DNA of 63,016 bases, filler included, from Salisapilia sapeloensis CBS 127946 (taxonomy: Eukaryota; Protista; Oomycota), in NCBI GenBank assembly GCA_023334545.1. It is 10 parts of 10 records of this genome, joined end to end, with 100 filler letters (N's around TTAATTAATTAA, not from the genome) between each part and the next. Parts side by side here need not be neighbours in the genome. Positions count along the whole stretch, not along the records: positions 49,701 to 51,870 come from JAADVB010000945.1; 9 more parts are not named here. One strand, written 5' to 3'. The position numbers and the translations under genes were made by a program. Positions 49,977 to 51,284 of the stretch are shown one piece after another. Within the stretch, counting starts at the first letter, position 1, and every line of letters starts with the position of its first letter. The notes below the pieces were generated by a model. The model was not told where the DNA came from. It searched no databases and saw nothing but the letters and a program-made list of their open reading frames with translations.

Positions 49977-51040
49977 TTACGCAGCCTCCTGCTTGGCAGC
50001 AATACGAGGCGACATGCCGCTCTGGATTCCCAGCGAATCCAACGCCACATGAGCAGCTTTCTGGCCGCTCACCATCATCGCTCCGAATGTCGGACCCATG
50101 CGAGGAGCTCCTTCCAGCTCGGCCACTTCCATGCCGGCAACGATCATGCCTGGCACCACTTCCTTCGTGCCGTTCACAATAGCATCTTCGGCCGAGTTCA
50201 TGTCGAGACAGCTCATTCCAGGTACATGGTCCAGCATGCCAATGCCTTGGAGTCGCTTCACTCCGGAAGCACCCATCGGACCGTCATGACCAGTCGCACT
50301 GATCAGCATCTTGCCTTCCAAGACATTCGGATCCATACAGCTTTGGGTGCCGTGGTGGAGCGACACGAGCGTCCAGTTCGTGACGACGCCGCTCACTCGA
50401 CCTTGCTTCACGATCAAGTCCTCGATGGCCGTGGCATTGAATAACTTGATGTTCGGAGCTTTCAACACCTTGGACAGCACGGTCGATGTGAACAAAGCAG
50501 CGTGACGGACGACAACATGGTCTCCCTGGTCATCGTATGGCACCTCCAATTCATCCAAGAAAGTATCCGCTGGCTTGCGGACAATCATGGACGAAAAGAG
50601 CTGACCGCCAAGCCAGGCTCCACCTCCAGGAGACACATTTTGCTCCACGAGAGCAACTTTGAGCTCCGGAAACTTGGACAGTTCGTAGGCAGCAGCTAAT
50701 CCAGCAGATCCAGCGCCAGAAATGATAATGTCCGATTCGGCAAAGTCGTACAGGTCTTGCATATAGCGCGTCGTCATCTCTCTCGACACAACTGCTTCAC
50801 GCACGGGACTATCAGGTCGTAAGCATTCAAACTTACGACGATTATTACGAAGAAGACTTACGCAAAGGCATAATTGTCAAATGGCGTCGTGCGGGCCGCA
50901 TTCTGAGCTACCCAGTCCGCGGACGGCGCATTCACAGCGCTGCCGGCACGGTGCAAGGTAGCGTTTGGGCCGACGGTGGCCATCGCACGAGCACAAGCTC
51001 CCATCGGAGCTAGCTTGAGTGTCTGTTTGAGAGAGAACAT
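49977..51040 (-). CDS. THI4: Thiamine thiazole synthase (THI4/THI1), Cys-dependent type, with N-terminal presequence
   Basis: Exons 51040-50862 and 50808-49977 (53-nt GT-AG intron) give [48 protein letters not shown] (sulfur-donor Cys), GHDGP and [13 protein letters not shown]. Confidence 0.97.
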
Positions 51041-51042
51041 GG

Positions 51043-51284
51043 CTGGTACATACACACAACATAGCCGTTATATCGGCGATATTCGTTCAAGCAGTCCCTC
51101 CGCCGGTATGACCCGGATCAGGTTCCAAGAGTATTTCTCAGCCTCAGCATCCGCCGACCCTCTCGTCATGTACGAGCAAGAGTTTCGACATTGCCTTTGG
51201 CACCCCTCGCTGAACTCCCATTAGTGTGTTTCGTCCAGGCAACCCGATGCATGTAGGAAAGAACGATAGGTAGAAGTTACATAC
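51043..51284 (-). other. 5'-UTR intron of THI4 containing the riboswitch
   Basis: Donor CG|GTATGT at 51284; acceptor TACCAG|CCATG, 2 nt before the start codon; lies downstream of an Inr element. Confidence 0.8.
51085..51215 (-). ncRNA. TPP (thiamine pyrophosphate) riboswitch aptamer, cis-regulatory
   Basis: Minus strand: GUUCAGCGAG-GGGUGC-[long P3]-CUGAGA-AAUACUCUU-GG-AACCUGAU-CCGG-GUCAUA-CCGG-CGGAGGGA-CUGCUUGAAC. The TPP consensus elements (GGGUGC, CUGAGA, UACYC, ACCUGAU, AGGGA) are present and P1-P5 can pair. Confidence 0.96.

Follow-up and report, generated by a model that had tools for sequence, protein, structure and literature searches.

The THI4 leader of the oomycete Salisapilia sapeloensis: a TPP riboswitch within a probable 5' untranslated intron and its possible action by intron retention

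The analyzed window, a stretch of 63,016 nucleotides (nt; filler included) from Salisapilia sapeloensis CBS 127946, contains a THI4 gene whose leader carries a thiamine pyrophosphate (TPP) riboswitch aptamer; all coordinates below run along the window and all elements of the THI4 locus are on its minus strand. We give about an even chance to the reading in which this leader is a TPP-controlled intron-retention switch with a single donor at 51284 and the CAG ending at 51043 as acceptor. Removal of the intron from this donor (donor 1) would produce a 61-nt leader free of upstream ATGs (uATGs), from which THI4 would be translated. With TPP bound, the folded aptamer would prevent intron removal, and, by analogy, the likely route would be that the branch/3' region beside the P1 stem (TTGAAC at 51090-51085) becomes buried or stiffened. 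The retained leader with its eight uATGs, three of them in the P3 insert of the aptamer, would then block translation of THI4, making retention the main OFF product. The retained form is considered translationally silent and the spliced form productive because the former has eight uATGs and the latter none.

TPP aptamer and its gene

The aptamer matched the Rfam model RF00059 over its full length (1-105) and, at 56.4 bits (E 7.5e-10), passed the gathering score of 54.3. The THI4/THI1 thiazole-synthase open reading frame (ORF) opens at the ATG at 51040, 36 nt past the aptamer end. Orthologous aptamers with scores of 53.6-70.2 bits were present at six oomycete genomic loci (L001-L006), each just upstream of THI4; the comparison further included Logan transcript contigs (L007, L008, L011, L019, L020) and sequences from the Joint Genome Institute (JGI; L009, L010, L012). 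The ligand-contacting core is complete at 51141-51091, with CUGAGA in J3-2 and ACCUGAUC...GCG.AGGGA in P4/P5, and is the same as in the oomycete relatives, except for one P2 change preserving a G-U pair. Judged by score, core and association with a thiamine gene, the element is a genuine TPP aptamer, and the gene, judged by the relationships of its protein, is an oomycete-type THI4 (thiazole synthase) with the riboswitch leader at its 5' end.

51077-51217, minus strand: TPP riboswitch aptamer (RF00059, Rfam covariance model) with a 58-nt P3 insert containing three ATGs

The P3 ATGs of the window are located at 51191, 51169 and 51150 (minus strand). At least one ATG was present in the otherwise variable P3 insert of every oomycete THI4 aptamer (L001-L012 and L020), for which the probability by chance is about 0.02 with five conservatively independent lineages, and several of the P3 upstream ORFs (uORFs) terminate at the TGA inside the conserved CUGAGA. 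The P3 ATGs would leave any aptamer-containing mRNA untranslatable. A further TPP aptamer (62.8 bits, positions 29-119 of L017), with a short P3 and a 3' end overlapping the ATG, was found within the 116-nt leader of a THI4 transcript from a JGI metagenome, placed just outside the oomycete clade and apparently corresponding to protein P0013. Two other candidates were discarded: the invariance of P1 as an additional constraint was withdrawn, since P2, P4 and P5 show no more variation than P1 in this set, and an Rfam RmaA match at 51364-51437 on the plus strand (22.7 bits against a threshold of 57) was attributed to chance.

Leader layout and the predicted 5' untranslated intron

The aligned leaders had a common order of elements: a CATT...TTT motif, 37-60 nt free of ATG, a G|GTA donor, a spacer rich in ATGs and TG repeats, the aptamer, a pyrimidine/TG-rich tail and, finally, an AG near the start codon. 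The corresponding elements of the window are the following (UTR, untranslated region).

51331-51347, minus strand: core promoter motif GCTCATTCTCGATTTCG, of the initiator (Inr)/flanking promoter region (FPR) type, with a predicted transcription start near A51343 (motif in relatives, listed gene 5' ends)
51285-51343, minus strand: predicted 5'UTR exon 1 of about 59 nt without ATG; its 5' limit is inferred (X1 contig reaching 51314, ATG counts)
51279-51284, minus strand: donor 1, GTATGT (consensus GTRNGT), by sequence and the conserved G|GTAnnN position in relatives
51043-51284, minus strand: predicted 242-nt 5'UTR intron holding the aptamer, with putative boundaries based on the layout; retained in all RNA contigs
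51085-51090, minus strand: TTGAAC, a branch-like motif of the YTNAY type overlapping the outer 3' strand of P1, with a putative function (sequence, relatives)
51072-51067, minus strand: TATAAC, a second branch-like candidate (sequence)
51043-51045, minus strand: acceptor CAG, 2 nt before the THI4 ATG (sequence)

The promoter motif, which we take to resemble the oomycete Inr/FPR consensus, had counterparts of the form CATT...(A/T)TTT in L001-L006, which precede donor 1 by 37-60 nt (for example, near 2757 in L001 and near 2714 in L002). The listed 5' ends of Aphanomyces astaci and Saprolegnia diclina genes lie 7-12 nt from an Inr-like motif (PMC5882874, table S2). The 5' end of the transcript L012 is likewise found within about 12 nt of an Inr-like motif.

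GTATGT is the sole match to GTRNGT in the spacer, and the distribution of ATGs changes abruptly at this donor: exon 1 had none in 308 nt, whereas the spacer behind it had 16 in 645 nt (six lineages; Fisher p = 0.002). The conserved layout, together with this sharp ATG-free/ATG-rich boundary at the donor, argues for a real boundary between a 5'UTR exon and an intron. On the 3' side, a (Y/A)AG is located 1-28 nt ahead of the start codon in every relative except L008, which taken alone is weak evidence, and motifs of the TTGAC, ATGAC or TTCAC type follow P1 at a short distance in most of the relatives and farther downstream in L007 and L008. The THI4 riboswitches of A. astaci, A. invadans and S. 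diclina are listed with the location "Intron" (PMC5882874, table S2). The aptamer of the window, as far as can be read from the arrangement of signals, probably lies in a 5'UTR intron at 51284-51043. The minimum-free-energy fold of the whole leader was uninformative: it did not exceed shuffles in stability (z = -0.37) and contained neither a clean aptamer nor the P4 pairing discussed below.

Retention of the leader in transcripts

Four RNA runs of the window organism, originating from two samples, were each represented by one high-depth contig (X1-X4). In all four, the coding intron of THI4 had been removed, while the leader was collinear with the genome from 50862 to 51314, 51274, 51259 and 51259, respectively; the riboswitch and the candidate second donor considered below were thus unspliced in X1-X4, and donor 1 was also unspliced in X1.

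50862-51040, minus strand: THI4 coding exon 1 (ORF homology and RNA contigs)
50809-50861, minus strand: THI4 coding intron of 53 nt, GT..AG, removed in 4/4 RNA runs with the joint 50808/50862
49977-50808, minus strand: THI4 coding exon 2, with the stop TAA at 49979-49977 (homology, sequence)

The same was true for the relatives: eight transcript contigs with an uninterrupted THI4 ORF (L007-L012, L019 and L020) also kept the leader, and the protein P0124 has an N-terminal extension of 44 residues corresponding to read-through of the leader, including the 3' half of the aptamer. Together, the eight contigs and the read-through protein stand for at least seven relatives with leader retention. One consensus donor and one acceptor flanking the aptamer, combined with the unspliced form assembled in 4/4 runs, fit a single-donor retention type of control. 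Because contigs hide or drop minor isoforms, what these samples show is a prevalence of retention, with which some splicing of the leader is still compatible.

The ends of two contigs are suggestive of the use of donor 1. X1 ends at 51314, exactly 30 nt upstream of GTATGT, and the start of L008 precedes its GTACAG by exactly the same distance; for these two Logan contigs of different organisms, this suggests a branch of a k=31 assembly graph (an overhang of k-1) at a used donor 1. The end at 51259 was identical in two runs from different samples, and neither a splice signal nor an obvious start motif was seen there.

Several results weigh against the retention switch with donor 1. No leader-spliced junction was present in any of the 13 assemblies from the window organism or its relatives, and neither look-ups of THI4-encoding contigs nor a metagenome scan recovered a transcript with a spliced leader; we infer splicing at 51284/51043, rather than report it, because no contig shows the leader intron removed. 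The ends of X2 (51274) and of X3 and X4 (51259) are inside the putative intron and fit no splice donor; an allele, a graph branch or a minor start site could have caused them. The three words sampled from exon 1 occurred only in one DNA run and in none of the RNA runs, although this is a weak test. The retention, seen in RNA samples with unspecified growth conditions, cannot be attributed to thiamine. Finally, the way in which TPP would block splicing is a guess by analogy.

Another possibility is that the leader is never spliced and that the aptamer, as part of the mature 5'UTR, directly affects how the mRNA is translated or how stable it is; it might, for instance, be a TPP-stabilized roadblock for scanning ribosomes ("Type IV" of Mukherjee et al.). 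This possibility would agree with the unspliced leader in each assembled transcript of the window organism and the examined relatives and with the lack of any observed spliced form. However, eight uATGs should make the retained leader poorly translated with or without TPP, the ATG-free/ATG-rich boundary falls exactly at the conserved GTA donor, the contigs that terminate 30 nt from the donor point to a branch at this place, and the location of the Aphanomyces and S. diclina THI4 riboswitches is given as "Intron" in table S2 of PMC5882874. We regard a leader without any splicing as very improbable.

Five RNA runs from 2025 of a second organism (B; X5-X9) contained 5-8% of the sampled 31-mers of the window, which could be conserved THI4 or aptamer stretches of a close relative.

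The candidate second donor and its pairing with P4

The first-pass annotation of the locus had proposed a TPP splice-switch platform mirroring Neurospora NMT1: without TPP, a segment upstream of the aptamer would pair with P4 and hide a second donor (donor 2), leaving donor 1 to be used, and with TPP the second donor would be freed, its use creating a uORF that overlaps the THI4 start. All the coordinates on which the proposal was built are right (uATG at 51252, GTATGT at 51284, CGG|GTTGCC with its GT at 51243-51242, the CAG ending at 51043 and the ATG at 51040).

51166-51252, minus strand: uATG with a 28-codon uORF (MHRVAWTKHTNGSSARGAKGNVETLART followed by a stop; translation), one of the eight uATGs of the retained leader
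51238-51248, minus strand: proposed anti-P4 segment AUCGGGUUGCC, including the proposed donor 2 GTTGCC (51243-51238); pairing verified, at chance level
51117-51126, minus strand: 5' strand of P4, GGAACCUGAU, the proposed partner of the donor-2 segment (aptamer model, pairing check)

The sequence also bore out the predicted products and the duplex itself. Intron retention yields the 28-codon uORF; a join of 51244 to 51042 gives, on translation, an out-of-frame peptide overlapping the THI4 start; and AUCGGGUU(G)CC (51248-51238) pairs with the 5' strand of P4 (51126-51117) over 10 bp, including one G-U, with one bulge. Forcing this pairing is cheap (-58.6 versus -56.8 kcal/mol for aptamer and spacer folded apart), and a post hoc test restricted to the proposed 26-nt patch gave z = -2.7 with mononucleotide shuffles. 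GGTTG occurs at the same place in five lineages (window, L003, L004, L012 and L020), and a similar split duplex is possible in L020. There are also precedents: the DUR31 gene of Candida parapsilosis uses a non-consensus second donor, GTTGGA, Neurospora crassa THI5/NMT1 operates in this manner (PMC5997356), and "Type I" has been assigned to Pythium THI4 by Mukherjee et al. (PMC5882874).

On the other side, the complementarity did not exceed chance when the whole spacer was considered. The best duplex between the 66-nt spacer and the 5' strand of P4/P5 had -13.6 kcal/mol, compared with -11.4 ± 2.6 for dinucleotide shuffles, of which 18% were as good or better, and the gain in folding energy from adding the spacer to the aptamer was -5.1 kcal/mol, compared with -7.4 ± 3.1 for shuffles, 75% of them being as good or better. 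Nor was the complementarity conserved in the relatives: the pairing of the homologous patch with P4 had a mean z of about 0 over nine lineages, GGTTG is absent from L005, L006 and L008, L009 has only AGTTG, and the uATG is not kept even between near-identical relatives (ATG in L003, ATA in L004). The first-pass caveat that GTTGCC is a weak donor agrees with its match to the oomycete GTRNGT pattern, which is limited to the GT. A donor-2 junction at 51243 was not present in any of the contigs, the ends of X2-X4 (51274 and 51259) miss 51273, where a branch at 51244|51243 would have put them, and full retention is the abundant form.

When seven segments of the aptamer and its flanks were screened in nine lineages as conserved pairing partners of the upstream region, mean z values ranged from -0.63 to +0.73 and no segment was consistent. 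The spacers (61 nt upstream of the aptamer) of L003, L005, L006 and L012 showed less folding gain than 81-100% of their dinucleotide shuffles, which also speaks against the two-donor arrangement; as judged from these folds, they look as if selected against disturbing aptamer folding.

The specific donor-2/P4 platform is therefore not supported, and we consider a two-donor switch of the NMT1 type unlikely in this leader; a donor-2 isoform may exist as a minor route, which is not needed for retention control. The aptamer, the THI4 gene, the probable 5'UTR intron and the uATG-rich retained leader are the parts of the platform that stood, in contrast to donor 2 and the pairing. The likeness to NMT1 similarly extends to an aptamer in a likely 5'UTR intron with uORFs and ends at the second donor, which is neither consensus nor seen in use.

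The ACTAAY motif upstream of P1

A short conserved element was found directly upstream of the aptamer. Each of the ten Pythium-like lineages has ACTAAC, ACTAAT or ACTGAC at a fixed 8-9 nt before the CAG|CGAGGGG of the P1 5' strand in otherwise variable flanks; the sites include 51225-51210 of the window, the region near 2776-2798 of L003, and those of L005-L009, L012 and L020. When eight lineages were scored gaplessly, the six motif columns were identical in 8, 8, 8, 7, 8 and 6 of 8, compared with 2-6 of 8 for the flanks. The motif is absent in Aphanomyces and Saprolegnia (Saprolegniales).

51220-51225, minus strand: ACTAAT, a branch-point-like motif 8 nt upstream of the P1 CAG (conserved in ten Pythium-like lineages)
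51208-51212, minus strand: 5' strand of P1, CAGCG (aptamer alignment), whose CAG at 51212-51210 is a possible proximal 3' splice site, its use being speculative

Two other functions of the motif were rejected. As a paired element, it had a 9-bp match, GUUGGUGUG/UACACUAAC, detected by eye in L003 and absent in the window and in L020; as a uORF stop, it fails because not every lineage has its TAA in frame.

The position of the motif raises the possibility of riboswitch gating at a 3' splice site: the branch point would be ACTAAT, its 3' splice site the P1 CAG (51212-51210), and P1, formed on TPP binding, would hide this CAG. Alternatively, the strong branch site, with its AG buried, would be a decoy trapping the spliceosome and enforcing retention. 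Apart from its conservation before the P1 CAG amid variable flanks, the motif agrees with the CTRAY branch consensus, and the branch A precedes the AG by a workable 11-13 nt. Synthetic devices with a 3' splice site in the closing stem of an aptamer are reported to work (PMC5934650). The commonest form of the consensus, CTRAYK, occurs in only about 27-31% of Phytophthora introns. Against this gating stand the transcripts, which retain ACTAAY and the spacer and show no splice to the P1 CAG, the Saprolegniales, which do without the motif, and the CAG itself, which belongs to an aptamer core invariant throughout these sequences. The simple version has, in addition, the wrong sign: use of the proximal CAG without TPP would leave the uATG-bearing aptamer in the mRNA. 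We hold gating of this 3' splice site to be quite improbable. The broader proposition, that the Pythium-like lineage switches by way of a conserved ACTAAY branch point with the first AG buried in P1 instead of an alternative donor, likewise appears distinctly unlikely. If it were true, TPP-dependent closing of P1 would decide on the use of the 3' splice site or branch point or else trap the spliceosome on a decoy, and the leader would be a natural counterpart of the engineered devices with a 3' splice site in the aptamer stem. ACTAAY before P1 is, in any case, a concrete element to mutate.

Relation to known TPP riboswitches

Oomycetes comprise many plant and animal pathogens, and no class of riboswitch other than the TPP riboswitches is, to our knowledge, known from eukaryotes. 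In the literature searched, no experimental test of how oomycete TPP riboswitches work was found. The THI4 riboswitch of Chlamydomonas, as reportedly described by Croft et al. in 2007, combines a plant/algal-type orthologue and a 5'UTR aptamer with alternative splicing leading to a uORF-bearing leader; its lineage and splice-site arrangement are said to be different from those considered here.

THI4 TPP riboswitches have been described in Pythium, Saprolegnia and Aphanomyces by Mukherjee et al. (2018; Sci Rep, PMC5882874), who predicted a two-donor/uORF "Type I" mechanism for the Pythium THI4 genes and S. parasitica on a purely computational basis, without transcript evidence. The locus of the window has the same gene, the same aptamer and the same position just upstream of the start codon. 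An aptamer ahead of an oomycete THI4 is, hence, a published arrangement, to which the window adds one more, and the element as such is ordinary. The differences are that the window THI4 is a divergent branch and that the present data point to retention as the prevailing isoform, which favors a switch of the retention type over the published two-donor prediction. The useful part is the transcript evidence, namely a leader kept in otherwise spliced mRNA in the window organism and in at least seven relatives. The ACTAAY motif goes without mention in the accessible part of PMC5882874.

As far as the work of Cheah et al. (2007) is represented in PMC5997356 and PMC5882874, N. crassa NMT1/THI5 and THI4 likewise have an aptamer in a 5'UTR intron and uORFs in the retained intron, TPP is repressive, and a branch-like motif adjoins the 3' side of the aptamer. 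For NMT1, the same accounts present a demonstrated second donor complementary to P4/P5, in contrast to the candidate of the window, which is non-consensus, paired at chance level, unconserved and not seen in use.

Experimental precedents for the retention reading are the DUR31 genes (Donovan et al., 2018; PMC5997356). In Ogataea polymorpha, DUR31 has a single donor and acceptor and gives the fully spliced product only without thiamin. In C. parapsilosis, the unspliced RNA of DUR31 increased with thiamin and the GTTGGA second donor was used experimentally at a low level; its pair of donors, GTATGT and a GTTGGA-type one, is much like the GTATGT and GTTGCC of the window. DUR31 differs in being a transporter gene of a fungal lineage with an intron that interrupts the coding sequence, in contrast to the intron of the window, which belongs to the THI4 5'UTR.

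Relationships of the THI4 protein

The closest named relatives of the encoded THI4 protein were those of Globisporangium polare, A. astaci and S. diclina, with 78-79% identity. The protein was placed inside a clade that includes these three species (tree support 98/94) on a long branch of its own, and its identity to any match was at most 82%.

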